Source of the DNA: Paragordius varius
Lineage: Eukaryota; Animalia; Nematomorpha
Reading direction: 5' to 3'
NCBI GenBank assembly: GCA_964247055.1
Contig: OZ176056.1
Span: forward strand, 2,480,001-2,544,000
DNA: 64,000 nt
Positions 15,291-52,977 of the stretch are shown piece by piece. Below the pieces are notes generated by a model, which ran no database searches, had not been told where the DNA came from, and worked only from the letters and a program-made list of their open reading frames with translations. Made by a program: the position numbers and the translations under genes. Within the stretch, counting starts at the first letter, position 1. The number at the start of each line of letters is the position of its first letter.

Positions 15291-18200
15291 TCATGCGTGT
15301 GTTTCAAAACGATTCAACAACTTAGAAAACTCAATCCTTCCATTAAATATGGTATCTAATGAAAGTGACCCCCCAGATTCCAATGAACATTTCAAATTCA
15401 GTAGAAAAGATGTATCATAATTTCGATGCACAGGTCTGTTTTCACCATCTTTGTACCTCAAGGATAAGTTTTCGTGTCGTTGCTCCAAATATATCTACGA
15501 TATTTGGATATTTTTGTGTAACATAAGTTAATTTACGGGCAATGATAATATATATATATATAATATACCATTTATAGTTCAAATTTACCCTTGAACAATT
15601 CAAATTCACCCTAAAAATAAATTATGTGTTTCCGAACTCATAACTCATTATTAATATGGCATAGTTTATTATTTTTTCAATATTATTTTAATTTCAAACA
15701 TAATTTTATTTTTCAAATTTTAATCTTAAAAAACATAATTGAATTGTTAGAGGGTGAATTTGAATTTGTTCGAGGGTGAATTTGAATTGTTCAAGGGTAA
15801 ATTTGAATTGTTTAAGGGTGAATTTGAATTGTTCAAGGGTGAATTTGAATTGTTTAAGGGTGATTTTGAATTGTTCAAGGGTGAATTTGAATGGTAAATG
15901 ATATATAATCATATATATATTATTTTATAGACTAAGGGTGTATAATCATATATTATTCAACGTGAGCTGCATTCATGACTAAAAAAACCGTCGAGACGCA
16001 TTGGCAATATATATGGGCATTGATAAATATTTTATGAGATTTTAAACAATGCAAATTGTAAAATACAAATTCCTTATTTTTTTCATGTTTGTTGCCAATT
16101 GGAATATATCCATTTTTTTGCGGGCCGTTTTTATCCAATTAATCACACACATATTTTTTATGGTGGCGGCACAATTTATATTACGTGATACATAAAAAAG
16201 TTATATCTTATATAATAAATTCCCAGTCTTATTTACCCTATTAGTTTTTAAATTTATCATACCTGTCCCATTTTATCCGTTATACTTTCTAAGCGTCCAT
16301 TTGTTCTCATAAAAGTAAAGGTACAATCTTCAGTAAAATCCACAGTCGAATTAATGGTAAATGGCTACAAAATATTAACAAATGGGAAGAAATCGTTTTA
16401 ATACTTTTTAAAGCCAAATCGTAATGTATGACTAATTTTGAAATTTAATTAGTATATGTATATACGTAAATGGAGCTTCTAAGCCGATAATTGCGTATGG
16501 CTTTTCGCAAAGACTTAACCATAGTTGATGAAAAGGCTCGACATGTTCGGGTTTTATTTCGGTTACATTTTTCACAGGAATACGTTCCATTGTAAGAAAC
16601 ATAAATACCAGGACCTTGAACATTCATATAGGATAAAGGAAGGTCTCTATATCCGAATATATCAAATATTATTCCATATATTTTTATTCAAAAAACAAAG
16701 GATTGATGTATCCCATTCACCCAAAATTTAAATTAGTAAAAGAATTTAGAATGGAAGATAAAATGTAATCTTTTTTAAAAGAGGTTTTATTTTAATATAC
16801 CAAGGCATTTTGACGCCAATTCATAACAAAATAATGTACAGCCATAAATAAAAATAATGTTAGTATACCTTTTGGATTTTATATCTATGTGCTCAATTTT
16901 TTAATATTTTTGTTATATAATTTTATCACACATTGTTATCATTTAAAAGATAAAAAGCTGTATATTTCACAGTTTTGTGATTTCTAGACTCTAAAATTGA
17001 GACAGTTGTAAAACACCAATGAAAAACTCATATTAAAATTAAATATCAAGTTACTGGTAAAATGTAGCAGCTTTTTAAAGTCATTTTTTACATCATCTAA
17101 CATTATAATTTTCCTGTTTTAGCGATAATAGATAAAAATGGTGGCAAAAAAGTTTTGAGTAATTTTATTATGATTTTACATTCTTTAAAAAAATATTTGT
17201 ATAATGCGCCTAAAGGGCTAAAGAAATTATATTCGCCATATACCTTAAATACTTTTTAATATTTTTATATATTAAATCGCTCTGGGATATTAAACTACCC
17301 CAATAGGCAATGAAATGTTAACACACGATATGAACATTAGAATATCAGCAGAAGATACATATCTCAATCTTCTCAAATTTATTTTATACCCAATCATATA
17401 ACAATTTACACTATTTATACAACAAGGCTATCTTACAAAAACATATAAAGTATTAATTATAATTTTGAATCTATAAAGTTATCATTTCAATAAATGTGCT
17501 CACAGATACTAAATTTGCAATATAAATAAAATTAAGCTTACTCCGAAAAATGGTTATTTACATCCCCCGACCATATATTGTATATACCAGGCAGCTTCAC
17601 AGCATTTCGTAAATAATAGGCTTTCACGTATACCGGTTCTTTCATAATAAATTTATAACAGTATAAGCATATATATAAATAATATTAATGTTAGTAATCA
17701 TATAATGTATACTTTCAAAATGATCATAAATGTGGGTCAATCCATTCCATTCTAGAAAAATTGCAAACAACTTTATATTCATTTGCATTTATAAAATATT
17801 GTATAGTGTTAATAGTATAGTTATACCAGTTAATTTGTTTGGGTCTGGAGAACATTTTGATAAAACGGCATGAATATGAGCTGCATGGTTCGGACTTTCG
17901 GTTGAGGAATCGCCGATGCGAGTTAAAACTTGATTTTCTCCTCTTTCTTTTTCGAAATAAAGATTAGTTAGGAAATTAACAAGTTCAAAGGGTCCAGCCT
18001 TGGCTATAACGTAGTTCGGATAGAATTCATAGATCATTAGCTTGTCAGATTCTTGCCAAAATCGCAACTAATTGATGCAAACAATTACACTGTGAGTAAA
18101 TATACATTGCTTGTTTTTCATTATAAATACTGCCAGGTAACCGAGCATTATTTTTAATAGCAGTATGAATTTGATCCCGATTTTTGCCGGACAGTTTAAT

Positions 18201-19228
18201 CACCATTTTTAATGTTTTAGGAAGTTTTCATAAATTTTACAAAAATTATAGTAATTTTACATATGATTATATTAGACAATAAATTTCTCTGCCACTTGTT
18301 TGCATTTTCTGATATTTACTATCATTTTAACAGTAAATCAATAAAAATTATAATTACACCTAATAATTTTGCATGATTTGTTATTTTATGATTATGCGCC
18401 TTATTTTACTAAAAAATGTTTTTCTTTGAAAATATACAACAAATGCCCATTTGTAACATATTATTCGAAAGAGTGAACTCTATAAAATATACTAATATGT
18501 TTGACAGTTTTATGTTTTTAATAAAATATTTATGAAGTCCTATATATATTTTTCAATGCAGCCCGCGGGATTTTTTGAGTCAACAAAAATCCGCAAAGCG
18601 ATTTTTGTTGGGACACTCTTGCTTTAGTATATTCATTAGCCTTAGTATTTGCTTATTTGCCTCATTTAAAATTTGACATTCTAAAAAGCTAGCAGGCCAA
18701 AGTTTAAAAGTCGTCGGCATGTGATTTCCCTTTGCAAAATTTTTTTCTGAAATTCACATTTTGTTGCATATGTCTTTTCCTATTGTTTTAGGAATTGGCT
18801 TTTATATCATCCAGATAATATTAGGTGATTAAGAACCCTTATATATAAAAAAAGTTTTAAATAACATTATGCATCATTATTCTAATGAGGTGTCCAACAT
18901 ATATAAGTTTGCGGGCTGAATTTTTTTCTCAGAAAATCGAGGGGCCCCCTTTATAGTATATATTGTAAATTAAGCATTTTATTAGATTTTAAACATGAGA
19001 CTGTAAATGCAAAACACATATAACTGGTATTTATTCTATTCACCAAAATTTCTAGTTCGTTGTCTATTGAAAGATTTATTCAAAATTAAAATATATCATT
19101 TTTCACTAAAAACTGTACGGGCAAAACGTAAAAATATAAAGACAAGCATTTTTTTTAAAAGCCCCATACTTTTTAATTTTTGATTTATTTCAATATAACT
19201 CATTGTTTTAAATGCCAAAGTGTGAAAT

Positions 19229-19262
<34 letters not shown>

Positions 19263-22043
19263 CTAAAACAATCGATTCTATATTCTACAATTGTTGTAAC
19301 TAAATAGCTTATATATGAGAAACATTAAGGTTTTAAAAAGTATGGTTGTCTTTTAGAAAAAATATTTGTCTTTATATTTTTACGTTTTGTCCATATAATT
19401 TCAATTTTTACTCTACTAACACTGTGTGAGCCTATACATTATGGAATATCGTATTTATCTGGAAATTTTCAAGAAATTTTGCGGGCCGCCTGTTGAACAC
19501 CCATTTTAAAAACCATAACACTCACCTTAAGTAAATCATTGACGTTATCCAGAGCAAAATGAGACTCATCCACACAATGGATATTGTAATCGGTAGAAAA
19601 CGCAACATCCAATGTTTGTTGACCATAGGCATATTGTCCAGTTCGGTTTTCATAACCACAAAATTTGTGGAGCCTTATGCGTTTCCAATCAATATCAATG
19701 TAAAACTGTTAGTGCGCAAAAAGAGTTAAATGAATTCAATGATAATTCTATGAACCGTTTTTTGTTAAATGTTCCGGCATTAATGTAAGAGAAATATAAT
19801 AATATTATTCATATACTTCAATGGGGTGACCAAGCTTATTTTTAAGGTTCGCTAACTCAGAAAAACTTTCGTTCGTTAGTAAATACTCCATGTGCGTACT
19901 ATTTTGGTTTCTATGAATGATTTGTGGCAACTGCAGCACAACTAATTTGTGTGGAATGGTTTCGATTTTCTGTGGTTGTACTGTGATAGTGTCTAGGCTA
20001 TAAAATATGAGAGATTATTAAAATTTTATATAATATATTTCTGTAAATAAAAGAAATTTTTTCTACAAATTTTTAAAAACCAGTTAGATATTTATTTGTA
20101 AATGGGCTTAAAGTTGTTTACTATAGGACCGCCCATTATGGCTCCGTCTTAGTAAGGTTCTCGAAATAAACTGCGCTTTGAACTAAATAACCCTTAAGAT
20201 TATCATTTTAAACTTTTCCGATTTTCAAACAATGTCTAATGTCCTATTTTTTAGTATCGTTAAAAGTAAACTCTTCCAAAAGTCTAATCTTTGTGGGTTT
20301 CTTAAATTATCAAAAATATAGAATAATACAAAATTATAAGTTTTAAAAAGGTTTAATATAGATAAAATTAATAAACAATGAATTTATATATTTTTCAAAA
20401 TGGTTTATGATAATAATAGATAATGGTGATGATGTTTTTACAATTTGGTTCATTATGAGAGGAAGGGGTAAGGCTATCTCGTAATTAAAACAAAAAATAT
20501 CTTTTTAAATAAAATTTATAATTATTACTTTTGCATAGTATTATCAAAAATGTTCGGAAGACTCAAATAAATTTTATTCAATTCCACCTTTTGATTTGAA
20601 GCGCATATGTCTTTGTAAAAGATATATTCATCTATTTAACAACATATATATATATATATATATTAAGGTTAAAGTTATTGTAGTTCTCAAAGTAGCCAAT
20701 CTCAGAATTAAAAACAGGTATCACAATGCATATAAGGAAATGCTCAAAAAACTGATTTTGAGCAATCAATTTTTCTAAATTCAGTAAATAAAACTTTAAT
20801 AGAGAATTATTCACAGATTTTGCTTTCAATTAGTTATAAATATACCAAAAAATGCCCCATAATAAAACAAATATTAGCAGCACTATTTTATCAAAAACAG
20901 TTGAGTGTTAAAACTATTGTGTTCTTTTAATAATGTTGACCAATATATTGATTTGCATGTAAGGTTTTATTAATACATAATGATTAAATGATTATGTTTT
21001 TTATAAAGGAATATATTTTTGTTGGTTTAAATATAACTATGATTACGATAAAAATTGGTGTATTCCTTAATATATGCCCCTTTCGCCTCCCAAAAAGATA
21101 GATTATTTTTATAAAAAAGCCTTTTTTACTTTTTGACATTATAAATCAAATTTAACTGGATAATGGATATATAATTTCTATTTACTTGGTGATTGATTGC
21201 AACTAAGACAAATTTTAATTGGAGGACTTTGTGTTATTTGGCTATGAGATCCAGTAGAATCGGGCCGAATGGAAAAGATTATTCGGGTAATTTTAACTAA
21301 GTTTGGGGCGATAATATGTTCGAATGTGTGGTCATATTTTGTATATTGCAATTTTGGCGGTTTCCCAGGTACTTTTTTGAGACTTAGCTTAAATAAAATG
21401 AAAAAATTTAAAAATATGAATTTAATTAAATCCCTCTCTATATTTGGATAAATTCTTTGAATTATTTAGTATTAATTATATGGCAACTAAAACTTTATAT
21501 TTTGATGCTTTTGAGTTCATGGACTGTGAAACATCTATGCGCCGGATAACAGGAGGGTCATGTTCCGTTATGAAATTGTGCATTTCATTTTCCATATCGC
21601 TCACATTATACGACGATCGGCCATATTGATATCTGGATCGGATAGTATAAAAATTTGCGACATTTTCAGGATACGTTTCAATACCTTCCAAATATTTAAG
21701 GTGCATGTTGGCTGGTATATCGATATAGAACTAAAGAACGAATGAACATAAAATATGCGATATGCCAAATATCTTTAATAATAATCAATTCTACACACTA
21801 AAAAAATTAATAGTTAATATTTATCTATAACCCTGTAATCGTTCATTAATTGATCTGCTATGGCATAACAGTCGGAACTTATAATATAATACATTGTATC
21901 GCTACCATGAATCATATTTTGCTGTTGAATAGTCAAATAGCCACTATATAATTTTAAAATATTATTTATTTTAAAATAATTTTAATAAATTAAATATCAA
22001 AATTTTACCCATCAAGTCCGAAGCGACAGTTGGTATCTGTTTA

Positions 22044-22074: not shown

Positions 22075-22914
22075 AAATTGTAAGTAAGATATATTTCGAA
22101 AGTTTGTTTGAGAACAGTTTCAAAGCCAGTGAATACAGTTATATTTGGCGGCATTTATTTTGTAATAGAACAGATATTACCATTAAAAATAAAATTATTT
22201 TTTTGCTGTCTTGATATATTTTTAGGTGAATCGGTAAAAATACAAATTTATAGAGTCCGAAGGGTTAAATGCAATATACATGATCGAATACAAAAGCAAC
22301 CAGTATAAAAAAGCTATTTTTATCGTAGCTTTGTTATAAATTTGTTTTAATTTATTTGACCTTATGTGGAATAAAAATGTGAAACAGAAAATTAAAATAA
22401 TTTTTTTTTCTCGTATTTTAAACGCTTATATCATTTTGATATTCATTGTCCTGAAACCTTTGTCCATCGAATGTATAATTCATTAACATTTATTTTTGCT
22501 GAGAACCGTGTAATATATAAAACCCAATAACAGAGGCGTAGAGGGCGAAGGGGGGCTGATACACCGGCTGCCATAGTTAAAGGGGCTCCGAATTAAAAAA
22601 AATTTAATATTTCAAAAAATATGTATTTTAAAGTTATTATTAATAATAAATAAAAAAATCACCTATTTATGGGTAGTCACGACCACGATTTTAGATTATT
22701 TTTTTAAATAGGCATTGAAGAATAGGGGGATGCAGCATGGATTCATGTACCGGGGGCCAGAAATTCATAAGCCAATAAACAACTTATTTGTTGGCCATTA
22801 CACTGGAAATATTTTATCAAATACGCATTTATAAATTTTAATTAGCTAACCTTCCAACATACATTGAGAATATGCGATGAGAATACCATACAAAACAATC
22901 GTTAACGCCAACAT
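15291..22914 (-). CDS. Gene A: 14-exon predicted secreted glycoprotein of unknown family, 656 aa; paralogue of gene B
   Basis: Exons (minus): 22914-22851, 22036-22009, 21943-21832, 21730-21494, 21387-21186, 20631-20529, 19997-19817, 19705-19526, 18067-17827, 17751-17713, 17638-17542, 16646-16466, 16364-16263, 15494-15291. All introns are GT-AG with matching phases, total 1971 nt, no internal stop. Signal-peptide-like start MLALTIVLYGILIAYSQCMLE. Every exon aligns with gene B. The ORF-track entries at 21476, 17789, 16445 and 15291 are pieces of these exons. Confidence 0.88.
15564..15904. mobile_element. 21-bp-repeat MITE copy (gene A intron 13)
   Basis: About 7 inverted 21-bp units at 15750-15895. 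This is the source of the spurious FKFTLEQ-repeat ORF. Confidence 0.75.
16950..17270. repeat. Dispersed repeat family (copies ~11090-11340, ~60290-60625, ~62500-62590 inverted)
   Basis: Shared blocks AAATTGAGACAGTT..AAAACAC, AAAAATGG(T/C)GGCAAAAAAGTTT and TTTGTATAATGCGCCTAAA. Confidence 0.7.
18280..18515. repeat. Dispersed repeat family (copies ~23215-23480 direct, ~9780-10050 inverted)
   Basis: Shared TTTGCATTTTCTG(A/G)TATTTAC.ATCATTTTAACAGTAAA and AAATGCCCATTTGTAA blocks. Confidence 0.7.
18885..19505. mobile_element. hAT-type MITE containing a nested TA-MITE (gene A intron 8)
   Basis: GGTGTCCAACAT...GCGGGC at the left and GCGGGCCGCCTGTTGAACACCC at the right, similar to the 54994 TIRs. No TSD recognised. 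Similar lone ends occur at ~18620, ~40077, ~42887 and ~48962. Confidence 0.5.
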
Positions 22915-24893
22915 AATTGTAATTAATTATTTCTTGTCTAAATTACAGCCTTTATACATTTTTTTTCTGAACTTGAACTCTACATTTTGAATAAATGTTG
23001 TTTGAGATGTGAACTTGAAATGTCAAAAAAAACATAATGCTTGTTTACATATAAAATCAAATAATGTTTACCACAGCAAAAAAATAGGGTAAACGAACTA
23101 GTAATATATGTTTTTATAACGTTTAGAGAGTTAGTTTTGACTGGTAAATATTATTTTTTACTACAGATTATTGTACCAATGCACTAACGGGTTGAACTAA
23201 AAAATAATTATACTGGATAACAAATTTTTCTCCCACTCGAGTTATTTGCATTTTCTGGTATTTACCATCATTTTAACAGTAAAACTGAAATAAAAATTAT
23301 AATTTCACCTAAGAATTTTTTAAAATTCTATTTTTTTATGATTATGTGCCCTCTTTATCGAAATTTTACCAAAAAATGTTTTTCTTTGATATACAAGAAA
23401 TGCCCATTTGTAATATATCATTCGAAAGAATAAGGAAAACTCAATGAATGCATACTAATATGTTTTACATCGATAGTTTTTATTGGAGAGAGGAAGCGAC
23501 AAACTAGCGAAGCGAGAGCGTTTTTCTTAATTAATATATTTTTAAAACTAATGGATGAAAACAGCTAACTTTGTCATGGCGATGAATGTCCAAAAAAGAT
23601 AACACAAGAAAGCTTTTTTGATTAATTTATTTGTTGTTTTATGCCATTCAAAACAGCCATTTTTTAATTTTTTTAGTTATATAATTTTAAAATTTCAAAG
23701 ACTAAATTGTTGATGATTTTAACTATTATGTAATGAATTTACAGATATAACTATGCATATTAGTTTCTAGGTAAAATAATATAATAATTTAAAAAAGTAA
23801 AACAAAAGTTTTTCAAAGATTTTTTTAGTGTAACCCTAATAAGTATATTAAAATCATTTATATTTATTATAGTTAGTCTTTAAAATTTCTTGACTTATTT
23901 AAAGGTCGAACCCAAATGACTTTTACATCAAAGTGATTTAAATGACTAACTACCATTCGAAAGATACAATTTTTCGCGCTTTTTCGAATGATATAAAATA
24001 CATGCTTATCTAATTTCGAGTTTAATGTTACAGGGCCAAAAATTATTGATAAACCCGAATAAATAAAATTTTTAGGTGTTAGACCTATTTTCAGAAATAT
24101 TATTTATGTACTTTAATGAAATAAAATTTAATTTGGCAGTTAAAATAAGTCAAAATTTGTTGTCTTGTGTTGTATAAGATAGATACTATTATTATTTTCT
24201 ACCACGCATAATATTTAGATTTAATACATATTTAAAAGACAACGAATTAGTTGATTTTAAAGGTATATTATAAACGCACACATGAAATTTAGTTCTGGCG
24301 GATATGTTAATAGGTGGAATAGCATATAAAATGTTACTAAAATAGCGCTAAATAAGGCATTCACACCTAAGTTGAGTTACGAATTATAATACAAGTAGGA
24401 TTAGGATTCTCTGATATAATTCTTCCTCTTCCCAAATGTATTTAAACGGTATAACAACATCGTCATTCACCACTTTAAGCGATATAATAGTTTGATTATA
24501 TACACAATGCACAAAAAATTTATATCCTTATGAAATATAATTTGTGATCGTTTGGTTTTGGGGCTTTAAGAGTGATATAAGATTATTATCACTTTTGTGG
24601 TAATACCCCATATCAGAAAACGGCAAATTTGAGCAAATTTGAATTTTTTGGTGAAAGCTAAATGCATTTCAATAAATATAAAATATATCAACTATATCAA
24701 AAAGGCAAAACAATATTTAATTAAATAAATATGAGTTGTAAGATATGAAAGTCTCAAATTTTTCGGACCCCTCAAAAATGGGATGGTTTTTTTAAATAAA
24801 CAACGTAAAATACAGTGTGTTCATGACATTAATTTGTAATATATGCTAAAATATGACATAAAAAAAGTTTTTTCGGAAAAAAATGCATAGTAA

Positions 24894-25664
24894 CAGGCTA
24901 GGAACCGGAACCGGACTTCGGTTCCTGGGATTTTAACAAGAACCGGTTCCATTTGGATGGAACCAACGCGGTCCGGTTTCAACCGTTCAGAAACCAACCC
25001 GATTCCGGTTCCACGCCCTTATGGTTCCCATATGGTTTTTGTTTTTAAAAACTTTATTTTATTATTTAAATTTGATTGTACCACTACATATTACATACTT
25101 CCAACTTTAAACCTAAATTCAAGCGCTTAATATTAAGCGATGCTCTCTGAATTTTGGGCGATTTGGCTCTTCTAAAAAAATAATAGTCATAAGTCGAGTT
25201 TATTTATAACACATATATTCATATATATATATATATATATATATATAGGTCTCCATTGAAAGGAGTTTTTTTTACCCTTAATTTTCTATTTTCAGACCTG
25301 AGAAGCAGTTCCAGCGAATTGCTTGGTGCAATAATTTTTTAAAATTAAATAAAGATTTTTTTGGATGCCATACTTAAATTAACTCTCAATTTATACCTTT
25401 GTACTAATACATTTTCTATTATATTTTTATAATTTGTTTAATTTATTTGCTACACTATATTTCTTTCAGTATACATTTGGCAATTTATAATAAATTGTTT
25501 GATTTATAATTGTTAATATTTTGGTTTTTTTATTATAATAATAATTTTGCCAATCATTTAATCAAAAGCCGCAATTTTTGAAGGAACGAACGCGGTTTCG
25601 GTTTCACTTGTTCAGGAACCGACCCGGTTCCACCTCCACTTTTTTGAACCGGTTCCAAGCCCTG
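24894..25664. mobile_element. Non-autonomous element with CAGGGCTTGGAACCGG-type TIR and clustered GGAACC/GGTTCC motifs
   Basis: CAGGCTAGGAACCGG at the left and CCGGTTCCAAGCCCTG at the right. The internal part 25090-25200 matches 940-1045 in reverse. No TSD found. Confidence 0.6.
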
Positions 25665-26899
25665 ATAAAAATCAATATATAAATTTGGAGCGCGTTTTAT
25701 CCAAGGTGGTAACGGTATAAATAATTTTTCCATAGATTTCGATGAGGTTGAAAAATTATATCATCACTTGGAAATTTTTAATTAAAATATGTTTATTCCA
25801 AACATTCTGAAACTTTTTTTGACTCAATTTAGCACATGGTTTTTTCGCAATTTCGGACGGCGTCGGGCATTTTAAAAAAATAAATAATGTGCCAAACATC
25901 TTAAGTAAAGTGTAATACTGCATTTATATCAGTCTTGAGTATAAATAAAAATGTAAAGAGGCATGCTATCGAAAGTGTTTCAAAAATTTAATTTATAGAA
26001 TAAAGAAAATTTCAGCACATAAAAATCTATTTTAAAAAAGTTACATATTGTCATAACTGGAATAGACCATCGATTTGTTAAGAATTCATGAAATAGCACA
26101 GCATTTTACAAAACTTGTTGAAAATCCTGCATCGCAAACTATTTAATAGACTTATTTTATTCACCACTATGAATGGCAACTTTGACGAAATTTAATCCCT
26201 CAACCTCGTTTTATTTACAAAATTTATTTTTGTAAATGTTTATTCCTATAAATAAGCATTAATATATACAAAACATTGTTACTAACATTCTGACAAAAAA
26301 AATTTTTTGGTAAATTGGAATGAATGTAATTCTATTATTTCCAACATTATTTTATAAGCACTGCTAAACAAATTTAATTCCAATTGAACATACAATATCA
26401 AATTTAGAAGAAAATTTTCAAACCAATAAGGCAATTATTGATCTAGTATATTTAATTATATAAGAAAAAACATGGACATTGTGTCGGTTTTAATTACTAA
26501 CAATTGTAATTCAACAAAATGACAGTAATTTTTCGATGCGATAAACAATTTTATTTAAGCTGAAACGTTTTCGAACACCTTGTAAGGTTGAATTAATTTA
26601 TTTGGGTAAGATTATATGTCCAGTTAATTTGAACTCTTTACCATTCAAAATTTCAAATAGGTATATCCCTTATTGTAAACATTTTGATCTCAGATATAAA
26701 GTTAATCTTTTTTTTAAACTTTTGGCGGGCGAGCCATCTTATATTAAATTAGTTGATATCTTTATATACAACGTTAACTTTTTTCAAATTTCGATATAAT
26801 CTATTACTACCGTTTCGCACATAATTGATGGTTACTACAATCATAGTATTTTCTACATTAACTTTTGAGGATAGCCAAAATTAAGGATACAAATCACTA

Positions 26900-27560
26900 A
26901 ATATACCAACTAGTATTTTAAACCGTATGTTTTTTGGACCAATCAGGAGTTTTTTAATTGTTTGCATTAGGTGTAAATATCCAGATAGCATAAATATATC
27001 TTCACCTCATGTTGACTTTTAATACAGATTTCCTTTAAGCAAAATTGTTTATTACCTGGCATAATGGGAAGCAGAGCGGTTTTGCAATATCATTGCTTTC
27101 ATCCAGCGCTATAGAATATATATGGGATATTTCTTTTAAGCTTGGAAACGATGAAATATTTTCAATACATCGTATAATGGCTATGTGCAGTTAAATATAA
27201 AATTTTAAAATTTGCATTTTATAGGGCAAATTTTTTTAACGGCAACCATGCTTTTTTGATGAATCCTCTTAATGAAGTGTTTGTTGTTTCTATATTGATT
27301 TCGAAAAATCAAAGGAAGTCTTATTGGATGAGGTGCTGATTTCTTTTCTCCAAAATATTTTGTTGATTCTTTGAAGTTTATTGCAAAAAATCAATTTTGT
27401 TTAGAATGAATTGAGCTCAAATTTAACATAATTAATTTTGAGTTTCGCCTTGTAATAGCGACGCACATTAAATTCTTTGAATACATTCGTTGATTTGCTT
27501 CGAGCATAATGCTTTATTGTAACATTTAATAAATTAATAATCAAAAGTTGACTTTATATT
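26900..27560 (-). pseudogene. Remnant of a Charlie/SPIN-like hAT transposase
   Basis: Minus-strand fragments in shifting frames: KEFNVRRYYKAK, YSIALDESNDIAK and KST*GEDIF. These resemble the KEYNLRRHY, SIALDESTD and TTRGEDIF motifs of this family. No termini found. Confidence 0.7.
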
Positions 27561-27876
27561 AATTGGCGGTTTTCTTCCCTATATCTTTGGCTATTATTAC
27601 AATAAATACCACTCCTTTCACCAATATATTTAATTTTAAAGTATATGTTAGCATTTAAGTGTTCATCCACGTTATGTGCTAACATATCAACTTAGAGATA
27701 AAAATTTTAATTGCTAAATTTTAATATTAAAAAAGATTTCAAATAGGTATTTTGTTAATATTTATTAGCAATTTAGGGTAGATCCTACTATTTTGAGTCA
27801 TGGTCGAAATTTAAAAAAGCAAAAACACTTTATATAAATCGATGATTCTGAACGTTTCTTTCACGGCAGAATTTTG

Positions 27877-27911
<35 letters not shown>

Positions 27912-28030
27912 GATATACCCAAATTTAAAAAGAAACAAAATTTTAAAAAAATAGAGATGATAGAAATGTTCGGCAAATATTAAGACAATAGCTTTTATTT
28001 TTAAGCCCCTTCATCCGTTTCCCTCATGCC

Positions 28031-39731: not shown

Positions 39732-40824
39732 TAAGTTTGGATTTATATATTCTAATATAATAATAAATCGTATATAGTGGTTTGGCCCAATCATATATTA
39801 TGATTTAACCTTTATTTGGATACAAATATGGGGCTAAGAAATCTTGGACCGAAAATTGTAGTAGATACGTGCTGTGATACTTTTTTATTCTTTTGATTTG
39901 ATTATAGGGTTATGTTAGATTTTTATCGTTTTTAGTGGCTTTTAATTACCTAGCCTTTTAAGATGCAAAAACATTCGCAAAGTAGATATTGCAGGCTTCT
40001 TACTTTATAAAAAATATGAAAGAAAAATCCCATTTAAACTTGGAAATGTAAAAATTGGCTTTTAGATATTTTATTATAGAAGTGTCGAACATGCGGCCCT
40101 TAGAAATACTTTGTGCGGACCACGAAAAATTGGGAAAATACAAAATAAGTACTGATTCCTCAATTTCCAAAATATGCTGAACACAGTAATTTTGGCAAAT
40201 TTTAATCTTAATATATGTTTTTACCAAATTTTGGCACCAAATTATGAAAAATGCTTATAAAAATAAGAGCGAATTTTCCTAAATTTTTATAGTCTTATGT
40301 TTGAAACATATAATATTATTAATGTTTATTATCGAATACTACCCTACTGAAATTCTAATAACCAGGTTCAGGTTTGCCCTAGTTAAAAACAATAAAAATA
40401 CATTTTACCAACTTTTAATCTAGCAATAATGAAAAACGAACGATGTAATTTCAATCACACATAGCTTAAGTATAAATTTAATTTCAATACATGATGTTTT
40501 TTTAGTAATTTAGTTACCTATATTTAATTTTTAAATGTTATAGCCTGCTGGTGGTATATTGGTTGCTATATATAACATATATAAAATAAAATATTTTTCC
40601 AGTCAAAACAAGCACTAAAAACCTTGTAAAAACAAGTTTTTTTTAGTTCGTTTACCCCCTTTTTTGCTGTAGTAGACAATTTAAATTCAAATCATTATTA
40701 TAACTTGTAAACAATCCCATAAATTATTGTATTTTAAATATAAATTTGTTGTAAATAAGTTCAAGTTCCATAAAATATATAAAGGCCTTTAATTTAAATA
40801 TAAAGATATATTTTACAATTAATT

Positions 40825-43800
40825 ATGTTGGTGTTGACGATTGTTTTGTATGTTAGTATCCTCATCGCGTATTCTCAATGTTTGTTGGAAGGTTAGCTTA
40901 TAAAGATTTTATAAGATGCGATTTATACTAAACTTTTAAATCAATATCAACATGTAATCATTCAGAAACCTAATAACTTTATTGAGTTTTTCAAAAATAT
41001 TTTATTTTTAATAAGATTATCTAAAAAGTATAAGTTTTTTGGGTTATTAACTACAATTATTGGATGAAAGCATTTATAATTGAATAATATTGTTTAATGG
41101 GAAAAAATCACAAAAAATTAGTTTAAAATTAAAATTTAATTTAAATAAATAAATTTATGCAAAATTTTTGGGTAAATTCAAACTTAAAAAGCTTAAGGAC
41201 ACACTTGTTCAAGGATCAACTTGGATGCTAAAGGACATTCTTGAACTGTAAATGATAATTAAATATTTTCAGTATTAGGACTAACAATTTTGGGGAAAAT
41301 AATGTTCTCTCATATTTTTAATGTCATATATAAAAACAGTATAGAGCAATTAAAAATGGTACACAAGCTGTTCTATGATTTTATTGGAATTTTAATTTTA
41401 CATCATGTAAGAGTTTGACACATTTTGTTTTTTTTTCAATTATTTCTCATTTATGGCGTTAACCCATTTTTTTGGATTCTGAATGCCCGTGGATTAGCCA
41501 CCTCCTCCAAATACAAACATATCAAGTGCACCCTAAAATATAACATGGAAAAACATTTTGAATCTAACTATATCATGAACTTGTTTATTTAGCTTAATCC
41601 AATCTTGCAAATAAATTTCGATAATAAATGATAATATGCGTGTGCTTTTTAATATTTGTGTATTCCTATTCGCAAATGATTTATAATAATTTATTAATAC
41701 AACTATCATATCTTAAAACGATAATAACCATTTTTTATCTTAGGTACCAACTGTCATTTTGGTAACGATGGGTAATTTTTTTATTAAATTTATTTCAATT
41801 CATTCCACATAACAACAATATGTTTTTTATAGGGGTTATTTGACTATTCAGCAGCAAAATATGATTCATGATAGCAATACAATGTTTTTTACCATAAGTT
41901 CCGAATGTTACGCCATAGCTGATCATTTAATGAACGAATACAGGGTTTTAAATATATATATTAACTAATAATTTTTTAATGTAGAATTAAGTATTATTAA
42001 AGATATTTGGCAATATTTATCGCATATTTATCATATTTTATGTTCATTCGTTCTTTAGTTTTATATCGATATACCAGCCAATATGCACCTTAAATATTTG
42101 GAAGGTATTGAAACCTACCCAGAAAACGGTGCATATTATGCTATTCGATCCAGATATCAATATGGCAAATTGTCGTATAACATTAGTGATATGGAAAATG
42201 AAATGCACAATTTTATAACGGAACATGACCCACCTGTTATACGGCGCGTAGATGTTTCACAGTCCATAAACTCAAAGGCATCAAAATATCAAGTTTTAGT
42301 TGCCATATAATTAATTTTAAATAACACAAAAAATTTATCCAAATAAAGAGAGGGATTTTATAAAATTCATATTTTAGCTATTATCTTTTTATTTTAGCTA
42401 AGTCTTAAAAAAGTACCTGGGAAACCGCCGAAATTGCAATATACGAAATATGGCCACACATTCGAACATATTATCGCCCCAAACTTAGTTAAAATTACCC
42501 GAATAATCTTTTCCATTCAGCCCGATTCTACTGGTTCACATCGCCATATAACACACGATCCTCCAATTAAAATTTGTCTTAGTTGTAATCAAACCCCAAG
42601 TAATTATATATAACATAGTAAAATTAACATATTTTGAACCAAGGCAGCCAAAACAATTGGCCCACCCTGCATTCACAAAATATTTGGACCTTTGATAAAT
42701 TTATACGGTTATAAATGATTATTTGAACCAATTATTCGTTGCTGAAATTCTTAAAATCTTTTGAGAATTATCATTAGATTTTGTAAATAGCACATTTTTC
42801 AAATTATGAATCTTCGCATTCATTAGGTAATTTACCGTCGCGAGCAGTACAAAGCATCATGAAGGGCCGCATGTTGGACATTTTTTGGACTAAATAATCA
42901 ATATATCTATACAGTAAAAATTGAACTTATACGGACAAAATGTAATAATATTAAGACAAATATTTATATCTAACATACTTTTATAAACCTTAATTTCTCC
43001 TATATAAGCTATTTAGTTACAATTGTAAAATATATAGAATTGATTGTGTTAGTAATGTATATCTATATTTCACACTTTACCATTTAAAACAATGAGTTAT
43101 ATTAAAATAAATCAATATTTAAAAGGTATGGTTGTATTTTACAAAAAAATCTTTGTAGAATTTTTACGTTTTGTCCGTATAATTAGAGTTTTTACTGTAA
43201 TAGACATGCATACCACGACGATTTAAAATTTTCTTTTAAAGTTAAAGTTACATTTAATTGATTAAAAATCGGAAAATTTAATATAAATATGGATATTTTA
43301 AGACTTTTACGATAAATTTATATTAAAAATTTACAAAACTAAAATATACTTTTAGAAATAAATTAATATTTGAACCTTTTACTGTGGTAATAATTCTATA
43401 AATATAGGAAATAAATTATAAGTATATAAAATACTGATATCAGATGTTTCGCGCATTTTTGTGTAATTATTATCTTATATGTGGCTCTCCTTTTATTTCG
43501 CCAGTTCATCATTGACATCATATATATGTATATATATAAATTTAAATTATAAACACATAATATTGACTAGGAAAAATATAAGTTTTCAAATAAAAAAATA
43601 TATTTCATAAAGTATTACTAACACTAAAAATTTAAATTTCTGCAATTAACGATTTTTCCTGGAATCATAAGGGTTATAGTAAGATTTAATCACAACCAAA
43701 AGATAAGACTTGCGTTCTTAATTAAATACCACACAAGATTTAAATTATTAATAGCGAAAAGACAAAATAGCCGAATATGGAATTTATTGAAACCAAATAT

Positions 43801-46800
43801 ATTTATTCTCTGACCCATATACTTAATATTATTAACATTACAAATTCAAAAAATTAATTACTAAATATTTCATATTCACCTTCATCACTGCATGTTTGAT
43901 TAACGGCCATTAAATTGTTTACACGAATTCCATTTAAACGGTTTCTGTGGGAATTAAGAACATATTTCTGCATAAAACTATGAAAAAAATTAAAAGGATT
44001 TTAATCGTGACCTTAGATTTTTGACTTGGTCGGAGCACAATCCTAGTTGCGATAATTGAAACATCTAAATTATTCTTTTTTAAAAAAAAATAGTTTTTAA
44101 GTTTTGTCTAATTTTATTGTATATAACAATATTTATTTATATATAATAGGTGAATATATCTTTTACAAAGATATATGCGCTTCAAAAAAGGTGGAATTAA
44201 ACAACATTTATTTAACTCTTCCGAACATTTATGGTAACACTATGCAAAGGTAAATATATATATATATATATTTTGATTTTTATTTGTACTATTGAATCAC
44301 GAAATTATTACATAGTGCCACCCCATGCCGCCATAATGCCCGCAAAACTATATGGCTCATGATCCTTCTCATGATACTTTTTGAATATATGGAATTAATT
44401 TCAATTTATATTCAGTTTTTTAATTGCTTACCGGTTATTTGGTAAAAAAATGTAATTTTATGGGGTGCAGGACAGTTAGGCGGATACGAAAAAATTTATC
44501 ATTGAAGTAATTTCAAGGTGTCTCTGGTTTTGCTGGGACGGAACAATGTCATGTATCAAAATGACTTTGCCCTTCGTTTTTCGATAAAATGCTTGGGTTT
44601 AAAATCATTTGTTAACGATATTGTGTATCCACCAGTTTGACAGAGGTTTGCAAAAGCTCATAATACACACTTGTCATCAATATGTATCGAAATTCGATGC
44701 AAAAAAATGAATTTCTTTCTTAGTCGTTGAAGCAGGATTCCACAAGTATTTTGCGATTTTTTTGACGTCATTAAAATTTTTGGGACCTAACTACTGAGTT
44801 TATTAATCTCTTTCCCATTGAAATTGAAGGACACATCAATTGATTCTTATTTGTGATACATTATATGCTTCTCCTAATAATTGGTAAGTTTGAGTTGAAT
44901 CATCCAATAACTCTCGTTTAACGTCTTTGCAGTTGTCTGGTTTCGAAAACCCTCCCAAAAAGCCTTATTCTTCTGATGACAATGCCTGCCGCAAATGTTC
45001 TTTTTAAGGCACAAAATTCGCATGATTACTTAATAATGAAAGCAAGAGAGTAGTGTTTAGGGAACTCAACTTGTGAGTGTTTATCGTAAAATGTCAAGTG
45101 AGAGCAAATTATAGCTAGTATCAAATAATCGTCTGCCTACTTACGGCTTCTCTTAGTTAAACGATAATAACTAATAATTACAGGTGCCATTAGCGTTGTG
45201 CCCATTAGTCAATGACCTAGGTCATGACCATGGTCATGACCACGAAAAAAAATGACCTAGGTCAATTTTTTTATTTTTTTAAAATTTTTATTTTTTTAAT
45301 TTTACGATTTTTGGTAAAACAAAACCTTATATTATCTCTATATGTATTATTTTGTTTTAAATATCATATGATACACATCTTTTCCTAAATCATAATGAAA
45401 TCAGCCTTGTGGAAATTTTCGATTAAAAAATTCAAGTTACATACAAGAAATGCAATTACCCTATATATATATATATATATTTAAATAAAAACCGAATGAA
45501 GAAACATCTAAAAGAAGTTCATGATGGTCGAAAGCAAGCTAATTATTTAGTTTCTTAATTTTAGTCTTAATTCTGTTTTCAAGAGAAAATAGCCAGAAAC
45601 ATTCAGCAAAATTTATTTTTACATCCTCAACTCTTAACATAGTTGAAAATAAACATTTACGGAGTTTCATCATAGTTTAAACCTAATTATGCTATTCCAA
45701 ATAGAAAACAGATTTCTAATAAATTACTAGATATATGTTATGAAGATATAAAAATAGAAGTTATTGGAATATGTAAAAAAATATTCATTAATCGTCGATC
45801 CCTTTATCAATATTCGTAGGGAGCAAATTAATATTATTTATTGAAGAATCGCAAAAATTTTTTATTAACTATTGACGCATCTTATCATAGTAAGACTGCC
45901 GAATATATCTATAACATATTATAACCAATTATAAACGAAATACAAAATTTAAAAAATTAATGCCATTGTGACCGATAATGCAGCGAACATGAAGGCTGCT
46001 GAATTGATTAATAAAGAATATCCTAATATAATATGGCATGGATGCCAATGTCATATTTTAAATAACTTGATCAAAGAATATAAACTTAATAAGATTAATG
46101 AAATTTTAAATGTAGTGAGCACGGTTATATATTAAATCTAATAAATCGTATAAAAAATTTCAAAGTATAAAAAAACTTTGAACCATTCCAGGTTAACGTT
46201 AAGTTCATGGACTTACACAATCTAAATAATTAGAGCATAAATAGGTTTCAATAAATCCATATTTTCTCGTTGCTCTTATCTTTCTGGGATTTGAAACTTT
46301 TTATAAGTCTTTATGTATGATTCCAGGAAAGATCGTTAATTTTAGAAATTTTTATCATAATTGGTGAAAATATAATTTTAAAAAAATATATACTTTATGT
46401 AAAAACCTTTTTTATGTGATTCAATCAATTATTTATGTATGTAATTATTTATTATTGGCAATAACATATGGTATGACCTAGGTCGGACCTAGGTCTGACC
46501 CCCTTTTTCAAAAAAGGGGGTCAAAATCACAACCCTAGGTGCCATACATTATTATACGGTTTTTTTGTATTTTTGGCTGAAAGCCATCCAAATCCTCATT
46601 ATTTAATTGTGGAAAAGTGCATGATAATTGGCATAAATATTTGTTTTCAAGGATATAAATTTCCAGCTTATGACTAATGGCCTGGTGTATATTGAAAACA
46701 AATACATTTCTAATGGTGCTTGAAAATTTGTTGACGAGTCATATATTTTAATAAACAATGATTTACACTTTTTCATAAATCTCCAATTTATAGCCTGAGT

Positions 46801-49800
46801 ACTATCACATTAAAAGCTCAGAATATTGAAACTATTCCAAACAAGTTAATTGTGCTGCAGTCTCCACAATTTATTCATAGAAGACACAATAGTACCAACA
46901 TGGAGTATTTATTAACAAACGAAAGTCGGGCTCAATTAAGGAACCTTAAAAACACGCTACGTCACACCATTGAAGTTTGAAATCAATATGATTACTAATT
47001 TTATTATTTTATTAAACAAAAAAGTTTGTTTGTAATATTAAATACGTTTTTAGCTAATATTTAACCACTTTTTGTTTTTAACAGTTTTACATTGATCTTG
47101 ATTGGAAAAGCATGATGCTACAACGAATATGCGGTTATAATATCACAAATGGAGAATTGGCCTACGGAGAGAAGGAATCGGATATAGCATTTTCTATCGA
47201 TTATAATATCCATTGTGTTAATAAGTCTCAATTAGCTCTAGATAACGTTGACGAATTAATTAAGGTTATTTGTGAGTTGATTATAAATTTGTGAATAAAT
47301 AAACTTTGATAAATAACAATATGGGATGTTTAAATAGGTTTAAGGCAAAAATCAATTTTTAAACCGATAAAATATGCTGAAATGTTTAATAACACGATAG
47401 ATATATAAAAATAAATCGTCCTGAATTTTTAGGGAGGATATAGTTTTGATTAAAATTTATATATATATATATATTTCGCATCTAGCAGTAATATCAGGTC
47501 ATTTTTTTATAGGTTGTAACTCATATCTAACACCTTTTCCCGATATCATTGTGTACAAAAAAATTTTTAATGAAAAATTTTTTTTTATGAGATATCTTAT
47601 GACCAGCGTATTCATTTGCCGCAAAAATTTTTATTTGTTGACAATCTATTTTTTGAAATATTGAGCGAAAATCGAAATCGGGCAAAAAGTGAAAATTAAG
47701 GATAATTAAGGATAATTTAAAAAATGATAAAATCTTAAATATTATCGTTTTTATCATTTTAGGAGATATTTTTAATATCTAAATAGCTTAAATCATATAG
47801 TTAGAATTTCTATAAAATTTCACGTCAAAAGATGGCGTTTTTCTTTTATCAAACTTGATAGACAAAAAAAATTAATGAAACTCTATTAAAATAATTTTTT
47901 TAAATTATTTTCTACCTAAACTCATTATAAAAATCTTAACATTTATATTTTATTCAGAAAAATAAACTTCTATATCAAAATAAAATCAAAAATATTGTTT
48001 TTCGATTTTGCATTTTTTTGTCATCTGGTTTATGAGTGTATAAAAAATTTATAGTGTTCTATTTTGGATCCAACAATCCGTATAAATCCCAATACAAATA
48101 TTAATTTGTCTTAAAACAGATTGTTACAGGAAATTGTAAGGATTTTTGGTTTATTCCACTAATTTTCATTCCTATTTTGCATAAATTATATACTTAATAA
48201 TTCCCACTCATGTAAGAATCATGTAAGAATCCAAAATAAACCAGTATAAATTTTTTATACACTCATAAACCAGATGACAAAAAATGCAAAAATAAAAAAC
48301 AATATGTTTGGTTTTATTTTGATATAGAAGTTTATTTTACTGAATAAAATATGAATGTTAAGATTTTAATAGTGAGTTTAGGTAGAAATAATTAATAAAA
48401 ATTATTAATATAGTTTCATTAATTATTTTAGTCTTTCAAGTGTGATAAAAGAAAAACGCCATCTTTTGACCTGAAATTATATAGAAACCCTAACTATATG
48501 ATTTTAGGCTATTTAGATAATGAAAATATCTCCTAAAATGATAATAAACGCTAATATTTCAGATTTTATCATTATTTTTGAATTATCCTTAATTTTCACT
48601 TTTTGCCCGATTTCGATTTTCTCTCAATATTTTAAAAACTAGAAACTGCCATCTTCAATCTATATGCATTTAAGTCACCCAAAACGTAACATGAATCCAA
48701 AATTTGATATTATATGTGCGAACGCTCTTATTTCCAAAGATTTCATAAATACACCTGAAATCCAACTTTTGAATTCGTTATTGTTCCAGTTATTATAATA
48801 ATACTAGTGAATTATTGCTAAAATGCCATCCTAAACGTTATACTTATGTATTAGTATAAATTTTTAGTATATATATAAATTCTATTGTCGTTATTAAATC
48901 CAGAGTTAAAACAAACAACCTATAAAACCCATAAATTTTATGACTGTCAATATGTAATCATGGGTCTCCAACTCCGAGATATTTTATGCGGGCCACGTAT
49001 AATTCGATTAGAGTGTCCTTGAACACTTCAAGTTGGTCCTTTAACTTTTTTATTTGTTTTTAATTTTTATCAATCTAACCCAGTGTATCATCCATATATT
49101 TTATTATATCAGTTCAGAAACCGTACGTTATTATTCAGTTTTTATAAAATATATTAATTAATATGGTTTAACATATATGAGTTTACTCGGTTATAAATTA
49201 AAATTTTTCGTTGAAAACATTTAGAAATGAATATTGTTGAATTCAAAAAAAAATAATTTGTAATAAAAAATTAGCAATTAAATGATAAATATTAATTTTA
49301 AATGAAAAAATATAATACATGCAAAAACGATGAATTTTAAAAAGTTTAAGGACAACTTGAAGTGTTCAAAGACCAACTTGAAATATTCAAGGATCAACTT
49401 CTACCTAAAGTTTTCATGGACACTCTTGAAGTGTAAATGGTATATTTATAAAATAAATCTTATATAAGTCTTTACAAATTTTGACGTTGCAGGTAAATTA
49501 AATATTGTTCTCCTTATTTTTACTGGTTCTAATATCCTTAATGGTGGCCTCGGGATTTTTGGGGTGAAAATTCCGCTAAGCCATTTATGTTGGGTACGCC
49601 TGGCTAATATCTTGGAATGTATATTATTATGGAACATCAGTGATTTTTAAATTTTGCTTATGCAAAAAACACCTAGTGTTAAAGGCAAAAATTAAATTTT
49701 TATTATATAGTTAGTGTGTGTGTTAAAAAATGTTGGTTATATTAATTAGTTGCGATTTTGGCAAGAATCTAACAAACTAATGATCTATCAATTTTATCCG

Positions 49801-52800
49801 AAATATGTTATTGCCAAGGCTGGACCCTTTAAGCTCGTTGATTTTATCACTAATATTGACTTTCAACAACGAGATATAAATCAAGCGCCTGAAACATCAA
49901 ACCATGCACTTCATTTTCATGCCATCTTATCAAAATGTTCTCCGACCCCAACTCAATTATCTGGTAAAACTTTACTTTTTACAGAGCACATCATTCATTT
50001 ATTTTTAAGAAATTATAAAGTTATTTGCAATATTTCTAGAATGGAATGGATTGACCCATGTATATGATCACTTTGAAAGTATATTATTTAATTAAAAATG
50101 ATATTTATATTATTATTATATTCAAATGTTACAAATACTATTTACACCTCAAATTAATCCTTATAAACATTTAAAATTTACCATAAAAATGATACATGTG
50201 TTTTTGGACAAATTTAACTACTTAATCTATGATATAAATATTTCTTTATGGCATAGCCATCAATTTATCTGTTTTGTATTAATATGTAAAAAATTTAATT
50301 ATGTATAAATCCAAAACTATGGGTAATTTTTGATCAGTGGTTGTTTAATTTTAAAAGTTTATTTATTTATTATAAAAGAGCCGGTATATGTGAAAGCCTT
50401 TTATTTACGAAATGCGGTGAAGAGGCCTGGTATATATAATATATGGTCGGGGAGTCCAATAAACCGTTTTACAGAGTAAGTAATTTTATTTTTATAATCT
50501 TTAATTTTATTAAATTTTTTAAATAAATAATTTGTGATATAGAGATCTTCCTTTATCCTACATGAATGTTGAAGGTCCAGGTATTTATGTTTCCTACAAT
50601 GGAACGTATACCTGTGAAAAATGTAACCGAAATAAAACCCGAACATGTCGAGCTTTTTCACCGACTATGGTTAAGTCTTTGAGGAAGGCTATGAGCAACT
50701 ACCAGATTAAAAGCCTCATTTACGTATGTGTCTTAATATATATATATATTATGCTGAATAAAATTTGGAAAAACCTCTATTTTTAATTTTTTAAACGAAA
50801 ATATTTAATATTTTTTATTTTTAACATATTAGCCATTTACCCTTAATTCGACTGTCGAAGATGTATTTGAAGATTGTACCTTTACTTTTATGAAAACAAA
50901 TGGACGCCTAGAAAGTATAACGGATAAAATGAGTCAAGTAAGTTTAAACTTTTGTTTGATACATTAAGAAACTTATGAGTTATAGGGTCGAGATGCTTAA
51001 TATTAGGTAATGGGTGTCATTCTTCTACGGTTAAAAAACAGAAACATCGGGCTAAATTAAAGTTAATTTTATTATTAAGGCCTATCGGAAATTTTTTCAG
51101 TTAGTAGTTGGTTATATAAAAACGCTTCCGGTGCTATCTTAGCCTCAATGGGTAAATATTCCATTCAATAATCGTATGCACTAAGGATTTTATTAACATA
51201 TAATATATTTATAAGTCCAAAGTAAATATAATTATTTTTTAAAGGCAAAATTTTCATACGCGATTCCATTAATTTGCCAATCAATTTTTGCTTATAGAGG
51301 CCTAAATTGTAAATAGTGATGTATGGGAACATATATAACACTGTACGTACGTTTATGCAAAAATAGCATTCGATAACTAAAAGCTTCAAACATATTGAAA
51401 TAAAAAATGCGGTTAACTGGCTAGAAAAAAGTTATTTTACATTTTCGGCTATTAGGCGAAATCGAATCGTATACCATAAAAAACGTGCCAAAGAATTTTA
51501 TTTGTTAAGATATACCATAAGGATAAAATTTATGAGGACCTTGGTAGAATCCTAACTTACATACATTATGTACATATTGGAATTTTCTCTAATCATTGTC
51601 TAAAAGATGTTAAAAGTTATAATTAATATAACAATATTATATTGATAATACATGGAATACTATAACTAGTGGACATGTCCCTCATGATCTCCAAAATTTC
51701 CTTTTCTGAGCATCCTCGATTCAAACTAGAGCTTATTAAATCTTTCCTTATTATACCATTAAATTTTGTTTTTGGTTGACAACTCAATCTCTTACCTTCG
51801 GCTTTAAAAATATAAATTTCCTTTGTTCTATAAAGCTCTCTCCTCTCTATATGCGCAAACCATCTCACTGTGCCATAGTTTTATCACTTATGATTCCAAA
51901 AACTGCTTTTATAGTTATTTTTGACTTTATTCCTGACTTCACTCATCTGCCTGGGAATTCTCATCCGTTTTATTCGCCCAGCTTGTGAGTTTATTATCAT
52001 GCTCGGCTGAATCACACTGCTATAAATCTTACCTCTAACTTAAGATATATACTGCACAAACTATATTGCTTTATGTGTTTTATGATAAGCGCTCAACTCC
52101 ACACCCAAATACCGTCAATTATTTTTAATATCCAATTTTGTCTTAAATCAAGATAGAGAAATCTATGCCGAAAGACACAAACTATGTTTTATTTTTGTTT
52201 ATCCTAAACTCACAAAATGAAAAATTTTAAGCTGTTTTGTTTGTACAAATAAATTCGAACTTCCAGTAATAAATATTTATATGCATAGATAAAAGTGCAC
52301 CTTCCTTAACATCAAGAACTAAAATCTATTTCTAAACTCCGTTTATAAATTGAAAACCATCAGATACTTCTTGTGCCTATCTGGCTAATTATTTCCTTTT
52401 CTAACTTCTCACTGCATGTAATTTTTCTAGGCATATATCCAAACTGATAACTCTCTATACTTAGTAACATTAATCATTCAATGAATTTTTAAATAACTTT
52501 ATAATATGAGGTCAAAGTTTATTGCCTCTGTGATTATTAGAATCTTACGCACCCCCCTCTTATATATAAACACCGTATTAGTGCCGTTCCGATAAGTTTG
52601 GTTAAATATTTTTGTCAATTATTTTCCAGTTTCAGACAACTGTTTCCAGCACTCAATGTTTATATCATCTGGCCCGGTATTTTTATTAACCTTTTTTATA
52701 TTATCCATGAAATAGCTTATGTCACATAAAAGTATGTTGCCAAATATTATAGATTTGTTTGGAACAACGACACGAAAACTTATCCTTGAGGTACAAAGAT

Positions 52801-52977
52801 GGTGAAAACAGAATTGTGCATCGAAATTATGATACATCTTTTTTATTAAATTTGAAATGTACAATAGAATCGGATAGGAACTCACTTTTAATAAATACCA
52901 TATTCAACAAGGGGATTCAACTTCATCATTTGTTGTATCCTATAGAAAGATCCAATATAAATACTAATCTGACATGA
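40825..52977 (+). CDS. Gene B: 14-exon predicted secreted glycoprotein of unknown family, 654 aa; paralogue of gene A
   Basis: Exons (plus): 40825-40891, 41744-41771, 41833-41944, 42059-42292, 42398-42599, 44150-44249, 46794-46974, 47085-47264, 49750-49963, 50040-50078, 50379-50475, 50543-50723, 50833-50937, 52753-52977. All introns are GT-AG with phases identical to gene A, total 1965 nt, open frame. Start MLVLTIVLYVSILIAYSQCLLE. All exonic indels versus gene A are multiples of 3, and there are synonymous differences such as CTT/CTC, CCG/CCA, ACG/ACA and TGT/TGC in exon 5. Confidence 0.88.
42912..43197. mobile_element. TA-flanked MITE, CAGTAAAAA family
   Basis: TA|CAGTAAAAATTGAACTTATACGGACAAAA ... 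TTTTGTCCGTATAATTAGAGTTTTTACTG|TA. Related copies at ~19090-19415 (inverted) and 8567-9115. Confidence 0.8.
44360..45180 (-). pseudogene. Degenerate mariner transposase remnant in gene B intron 6
   Basis: Minus-strand GKVILIHDIVPS and SYPPNCPAP resemble the mariner VILLHDNARPH and HPPYSPDLAP motifs. The 44980-45170 part is similar to 61660-61850. Boundaries are approximate. Confidence 0.6.
45191..46537 (+). mobile_element. Internally deleted hAT element in gene B intron 6
   Basis: TIR TAG(C/G)GTTGTG ... CACAACCCTA, perfect 8-bp TSD GGTGCCAT (45183-45190, 46538-46545) and subterminal TGACCTAGGTC motifs. Plus-strand fragment AIVTDNAANMKAAELINKEYPNIIWHGCQCHILN (~45960-46070) carries the hAT DNAANM and CxxH motifs. 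Confidence 0.9.
47645..48645. repeat. ~1-kb imperfect palindrome (arms ~425 bp, loop ~160 bp) in gene B intron 8
   Basis: 47645-48070 is the reverse complement of 48228-48645, for example TTGTCATCTGGTTTATGAGTGTATAAAAAATTTATA versus TATAAATTTTTTATACACTCATAAACCAGATGACAA. Confidence 0.9.
49010..49444. mobile_element. Variant 21-bp-repeat MITE (TTGAACACTTCAAGTTGGTCC units)
   Basis: Inverted subterminal 21-bp units and the same TAAATGGTATA right end. Fragments also at ~41190-41255 and ~8280-8311. Confidence 0.6.
51690..52720 (-). mobile_element. Old, heavily deleted RTE LINE remnant in gene B intron 13
   Basis: Minus-strand TGPDDINIECWKQL (start of the RT domain, ~52620-52680) and LRWFAHIERR...GKRLSCQPK (RTE C-terminus, ORF 51623-51868). 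Confidence 0.75.

Follow-up and report, generated by a model that had tools for sequence, protein, structure and literature searches.

A head-to-head pair of intact 14-exon genes for predicted secreted glycoproteins in the horsehair worm Paragordius varius, and their divergent relatives in the same genome

Secreted protein families restricted to one lineage are common in parasite genomes. The closest comparators for the locus described here are the taxonomically restricted secreted families of parasitic worms, for example the micro-exon genes of schistosomes and the nematode-specific secreted families. Horsehair worms, known for manipulating their insect hosts, belong to one of the least studied animal phyla. 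A 64,000-nt stretch of the genome of one of them, Paragordius varius (contig OZ176056.1, positions 2,480,001 to 2,544,000; hereafter the window), carries two similar genes on opposite strands, A and B, which a first-pass annotation made from these letters had described as a head-to-head pair encoding a secreted glycoprotein of no assigned family. That observation on the gene pair is confirmed. On balance, and with some reserve, we read A and B as intact, constrained paralogs whose products are soluble, secreted, disulfide-bonded glycoproteins, in a family confined to the horsehair-worm lineage as far as it has been searched for.

Gene A runs from 22914 to 15291 on the minus strand and gene B from 40825 to 52977 on the plus strand (Table 1). 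With exon borders set by coordinates, each consists of 14 exons that join into a single open frame (1971 nt and 656 aa in A; 1965 nt and 654 aa in B), with no internal stop in either, and with a stop just upstream of the ATG in both. All 26 introns begin with GT and end with AG, the phases are identical between the two genes, and both have micro-exons of 28 nt (exon 2) and 39 nt (exon 10), all as first described; the 28-nt exon is the sole conserved AG-28nt-GT candidate within intron 1. Exonic length differences are likewise all multiples of 3: 3 nt in exons 1, 4, 6, and 13, and 27 nt in exon 9, as already listed, plus 21 nt in exon 14, which had been overlooked and which combines a 3-nt indel with a later stop. 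The donor of exon 4 is ambiguous by 6 nt in each gene. Substitutions between A and B fall at codon positions 1, 2, and 3 in the ratio 98:63:143 (p about 1e-7), the pattern expected of coding sequence. The window as a whole is AT-rich (GC 21-34%), with spliced genes of animal type and retrotransposon remnants.

When region A (reverse strand) is compared with region B by blastn and tblastn, the conserved blocks are collinear, on opposite strands, and extend from about 250 nt upstream of the ATGs to the stop codons. Within the shared upstream stretch, TATAAAGG is kept 42-47 nt before the ATG in both genes, and is a candidate promoter element. The inverted homology is limited to this gene unit; its arms are about 72-85% identical at the DNA level where they can be aligned, and are separated by 17.9 kb of unrelated DNA. 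The arrangement is best described as an old inverted duplication, not a near-perfect palindrome: copying of one gene unit in inverted orientation would have left the divergently oriented paralogs seen here.

The two proteins are 77% identical. By the Nei-Gojobori method, synonymous divergence (dS) is 0.41 and nonsynonymous divergence (dN) 0.13, giving a ratio (omega) of 0.31, with a bootstrap range of 0.24-0.40. In every exon for which it can be computed (dS is undefined for exon 2), omega is below 0.6, so that it does not approach 1 across the exons. Had one copy drifted freely since the duplication, a pairwise omega of at least 0.5 and a broken frame would be expected. With a third family member, paralog C (below), as outgroup, derived changes are almost evenly divided (15 specific to A versus 16 to B). 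The low omega, the intact frames and 26 intact splice-site pairs, and the symmetric rates together support the earlier suggestion that both copies are functional and have been maintained by purifying selection.

It is very unlikely that either copy, or both, is a relic that is no longer expressed, or that the exon models arose artificially from the mutual fitting of two similar sequences. A 2-kb frame drifting freely in AT-rich DNA at this dS should have gained many stops and frameshifts, and none were found; even the upper bound of omega is 0.40; rates in A and B are symmetric relative to paralog C; and that paralog, just 26% identical, keeps the same intron positions. What such an explanation has in its favor is the similarity of the short introns (2, 3, 4, 7, 9, 10, and 12), which at 78-92% identity between A and B suggests that the exons, too, are similar in part because the duplication is fairly recent. 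The figure for synonymous sites is about 69%; constraint on short introns, or patchy gene conversion, is possible as the source of the higher intron identity.

The first-pass annotation treated the pair as the whole story, and as a candidate for an undescribed system. A and B belong instead to a gene family, not a system, and would be the youngest members of an old and fast-diverging one. Searches covered the whole genome (110.6 Mb in 44 contigs, with the window at C7:2480001-2544000). As single queries, exons 4, 5, and 12 match only A and B in it, while exon 9, at a loose threshold, gives two weak matches; from these, further members were traced by local comparisons and exon profiles. The clearest, paralog C, lies on another contig (G000:C2:7172653-7184842, - strand), with profile E-values of 1e-23 for exon 4, 4e-22 for exon 9, and 1e-31 for exon 12; no locus in the genome other than A, B, and C matches the exon 4 and exon 12 profiles. 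Read directly in the DNA, its acceptors for exons 4, 9, 10, 11, and 12 and its donor for exon 11 fall at the same codons and in the same phases as in A and B; its exon 10 is 33 nt long. A phase-constrained scan yields an open chain from exon 4 to exon 14 that encodes 579 aa, 26% identical to A (exons 1-3 and 5 are uncertain), with 8 of the 11 Cys columns of this stretch kept and a C-terminus that aligns with those of A and B. From these shared intron positions and phases and the collinear similarity, A, B, and C form a single old family with a conserved gene structure. The exon-12 profile also matched, weakly, a single-exon frame of about 747-748 aa (L020:3587-5830, - strand; G000:C2 about 3742586-3744829), rejected as a chance match to an unrelated protein; judged by eye, it looks like a multi-pass membrane protein of receptor-like type.

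Beyond these three, which have the full 14-exon architecture, a core of exons 8 and 9 is found at no fewer than 7 loci and about ten in all. A profile of eight exon-9 sequences has matches at 12 places, spread over five contigs, and stops interrupt two of the 12; an independent exon-8 profile matches 8 places in the genome, 7 at E 1e-9 or better, and one of its matches adjoins an exon-9 match that lay outside the exon-8 training set. The consensus of this core is FYIDIP...CG...YG...C in exon 8 and RFWQ...YP-D/N-Y...C in exon 9. In distant loci, a local iterated hidden Markov model search over the loci retrieved recovered mainly the exon-9 motif. Of exon 4, only the first 17 residues or so are conserved family-wide. 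Two tandem members on contig C1 (G000:C1 about 14888300-14897500, + strand), with a retrotransposon lacking long terminal repeats (non-LTR) between them (L009:145-2063), have retained the acceptors that precede FY(I/M)DIP and (I/L)R(I)(W/R)Q. In the downstream member, exons 9 and 10 are fused in an open frame of 146 aa, and a candidate exon for a signal peptide is seen (L009:2669-2989). There is also a second, much more diverged head-to-head pair with the exon-9 motif, its members about 10 kb apart (G000:C2:7368888-7369082, - strand, and 7379128-7379346, + strand). Exons 4 and 8 both begin with FYIDI(P/D) in phase 0, in A, B, and paralogs, a hint of an ancient internal duplication of a module, but Smith-Waterman scores for the two halves of the protein against shuffled sequences gave z of about 1.3, which is not significant.

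The predicted products have a computed mass of about 74 kDa and isoelectric points of 7.1 and 8.4. On a Kyte-Doolittle scan, the only strongly hydrophobic 19-residue windows in either protein are those at residues 1-6 (the next best in A scores 1.09, at residue 169), and neither has a transmembrane segment or a hydrophobic tail of the glycosylphosphatidylinositol (GPI) type on the same scan. The N-terminal hydrophobic run covers about 15 residues, with A-x-S before a likely cut, according to a heuristic combination of hydrophobicity and the -3/-1 rule. Fourteen Cys columns are shared between A and B, of which 13 or 14, according to where cleavage occurs, would be left after processing, as are 8 N-x-S/T sequons; the coordinates and counts of the first-pass annotation (13 mature Cys and at least 7 sequons) and its description of the two termini hold, and secretion, which it had proposed, is plausible on the hydrophobicity profile and the -3/-1 rule. 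The products would enter the secretory pathway by way of a short N-terminal signal peptide, carry several N-glycans, be held together by disulfides, and remain soluble outside the cell.

Retention in or on the cell, by a signal anchor, by residence in the endoplasmic reticulum (ER) or lysosome, or by attachment through an unseen modification, is an alternative that we consider distinctly improbable. The hydrophobic run does lack a charged n-region, and its cleavage site is a predicted one, but some 15 residues is short for a membrane span, and the C-termini of A, B, and C include neither a KDEL-like nor a hydrophobic GPI-type sequence. As to what secreted proteins of this kind might do, an alignment of A, B, and C has 124 invariant columns. 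These are mainly L, Y, S, I, E, N, or C, just one is His, and they retain no motif of a catalytic type. Since the invariant residues are mostly hydrophobic or aromatic ones of a core, or Cys, Pro, and Gly, the best guess is that A and B are not enzymes but have a binding or structural role outside the cell, perhaps on the surface of the body or where parasite and host meet.

Outside relatives were sought exon by exon. Against Pfam-A, 28 exon-sized pieces of A, B, and C and five open reading frames (ORFs) of the C1 locus were scanned with E up to 1-10 and gave no family match; the best hits, to assorted families with no relation to one another, had E 0.004-0.15 and scored 12-17 bits where the cut-offs are 24-34. 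Searches of the PDB by phmmer and hmmsearch, with exons 4 and 9 singly and with profiles of exons 4, 9, and 12, gave a best E of 0.37. Exon 4 and a 145-aa paralog exon found no usable match in the ESM Atlas. A word search with exon 4 and a four-sequence alignment of exon 9 found nothing, within a length window that excludes full-length proteins, and a HMMER search with exon 4 against 1.84 billion protein representatives gave 0 matches. In a metagenome scan with the exon-9 profile, 0 of 234 pattern sites were confirmed. As far as these searches reach, the earlier statement that the proteins belong to no known family holds, and they suggest that the family is restricted to its lineage.

Several points weigh against this reading of the pair. 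Splicing, expression, and secretion are all read from DNA, which leaves relics or fitting artefacts their small share of probability; the call of a signal peptide uses hydrophobicity and the -3/-1 rule instead of a trained predictor; and the case against an enzyme is an argument from missing motifs. The database queries were all pieces of 30-145 aa, with little power for remote homology. Exon 4, with its 17 or so family-conserved residues, was a weak probe, and exon 9 would in hindsight have been a better one. Even the protein of this very genome was absent from the HMMER results, which may mean that the library lacks hairworm proteomes.

These limits on the searches favor one alternative in particular, that A and B are very divergent members of a described family or fold, for example of a beta-rich extracellular domain family. 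The one attempt at a fold, an AlphaFold2 model of the fused exons 9 and 10 of paralog D2 (145 aa, four aligned sequences), had a predicted local distance difference test (pLDDT) score of 35 and is unusable; and since identity within the family is itself just about 26%, relatives outside it should be harder yet to detect. What speaks against this alternative is the outcome, given above, for 28 pieces of three paralogs in Pfam and for three exon profiles in the PDB. We regard membership in a known family as possible, if doubtful, and give about the same chance to a known fold coming to light for A and B in full-length analysis.

The 17.9 kb between the start codons of A and B was found to contain no further family gene. 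Among its transposon remnants, an 89-aa ORF (29099-29368) matches Dimer_Tnp_hAT with E 1.3e-6, while other ORFs are transposase-like by eye only. Such remnants, which also occur close to other loci of the family, would fit descent of the family from a transposon, or from a viral envelope-type glycoprotein captured by the host, as would proteins that are (by prediction) glycosylated, Cys-bearing, and signal-carrying. The 13 conserved introns and the lack of a membrane anchor argue otherwise; no gag/pol or transposase lies adjacent in frame, and the hAT and reverse transcriptase pieces are separate, decayed insertions. We consider such an origin extremely unlikely.

The window has other repeats as well. 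A 21-bp minisatellite lies within intron 13 of gene A (15739-15892; 7.3 copies, 91% matches), with related sequence just downstream of gene B (53393-53623) and at 5056-5282. An 800-bp dispersed repeat is present in inverted copies of 79% identity (13540-14339 and 37861-38625), outside the gene duplication, and several shorter repeat families are dispersed across the window. Scans for Rfam families and for tRNAs over the same stretch were negative.

Table 1. Positions of the features of genes A and B and of their surroundings, numbered from the first letter of the window.
Feature	Position	Strand	Remarks
Gene A exon 1	22851..22914	-	64 nt; ATG at 22914; signal-like hydrophobic N-terminus
Gene A exon 2	22009..22036	-	28-nt micro-exon
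Gene A exon 3	21832..21943	-	112 nt
Gene A exon 4	21494..21730	-	237 nt; donor at 21494 or 21488; FYIDIP motif at start; most constrained exon, omega 0.13
Gene A exon 5	21186..21387	-	202 nt
Gene A exon 6	20529..20631	-	103 nt
Gene A exon 7	19817..19997	-	181 nt
Gene A exon 8	19526..19705	-	180 nt; FYIDI at start; first half of family core
Gene A exon 9	17827..18067	-	241 nt; RFWQ...YPNY motif common to 12 genome loci
Gene A exon 10	17713..17751	-	39-nt micro-exon
Gene A exon 11	17542..17638	-	97 nt
Gene A exon 12	16466..16646	-	181 nt
Gene A exon 13	16263..16364	-	102 nt
Gene A exon 14	15291..15494	-	204 nt, including TGA stop
Gene B exon 1	40825..40891	+	67 nt; ATG at 40825; signal-like N-terminus
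Gene B exon 2	41744..41771	+	28-nt micro-exon
Gene B exon 3	41833..41944	+	112 nt
Gene B exon 4	42059..42292	+	234 nt; donor at 42292 or 42298
Gene B exon 5	42398..42599	+	202 nt
Gene B exon 6	44150..44249	+	100 nt
Gene B exon 7	46794..46974	+	181 nt
Gene B exon 8	47085..47264	+	180 nt
Gene B exon 9	49750..49963	+	214 nt; 27 nt shorter than exon 9 of A
Gene B exon 10	50040..50078	+	39-nt micro-exon
Gene B exon 11	50379..50475	+	97 nt
Gene B exon 12	50543..50723	+	181 nt
Gene B exon 13	50833..50937	+	105 nt
Gene B exon 14	52753..52977	+	225 nt, including TGA stop
TATAAAGG	22949..22956	-	42 nt upstream of gene A ATG, within duplicated ~250-nt upstream stretch; read from sequence
TATAAAGG	40778..40785	+	47 nt upstream of gene B ATG
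Spacer between start codons of A and B	22915..40824		17.9 kb; decayed hAT remnants and dispersed repeats
hAT-type transposon remnants in spacer	29099-30630, 34369-34659	-	decayed
Non-LTR reverse transcriptase	55991-57311	+	broken; three ORFs, with RVT_1 E-values of 2e-14 and 4e-19

The A/B family is undescribed but of an ordinary kind, that of parasite genes for secreted proteins restricted to one lineage, and nothing in it points to a new mechanism. A family of large, predicted secreted glycoproteins that is selectively maintained, and for which no relatives are recognised, is a sensible one in which to seek surface or host-interaction molecules. The pair is also a useful test case for annotation, because views based on ORFs show it as fragments only. 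A more far-reaching proposal, which we think unlikely, is that A, B, and C found an extracellular superfamily specific to horsehair worms, of at least ten loci, with an undescribed Cys-module fold encoded by exons 8 and 9 ('FYIDIP-RFWQ') and used at the parasite surface or through release into the insect host.

Among described domains, the immunoglobulin-like ones invite comparison, as exon 12 is beta-rich in composition and places a Cys in a Y-x-C context. However, the distance to the hydrophobic motif upstream is not the same, and paralog C lacks the Tyr. Membership in the immunoglobulin superfamily is not supported on this evidence: the sole match, of the exon-12 profile to CD276/B7-H3 in the PDB, has E 0.37 over 27 residues, which is not significant, and the exon-sized pieces have no Pfam match to an immunoglobulin family.

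The closer likeness is to the secreted families of parasitic worms named at the outset, although exon-sized searches found no homology to them. The A and B proteins are large (about 655 aa), and their genes are built mostly of ordinary exons of 100-240 nt, with two micro-exons only; unlike in those families, their introns are of mixed, not symmetric, phases, with no hint of exon shuffling. What A and B have in common with them is a (predicted) signal peptide, the lack of detectable relatives outside, fast divergence between paralogs, local duplication, and a parasitic host organism.

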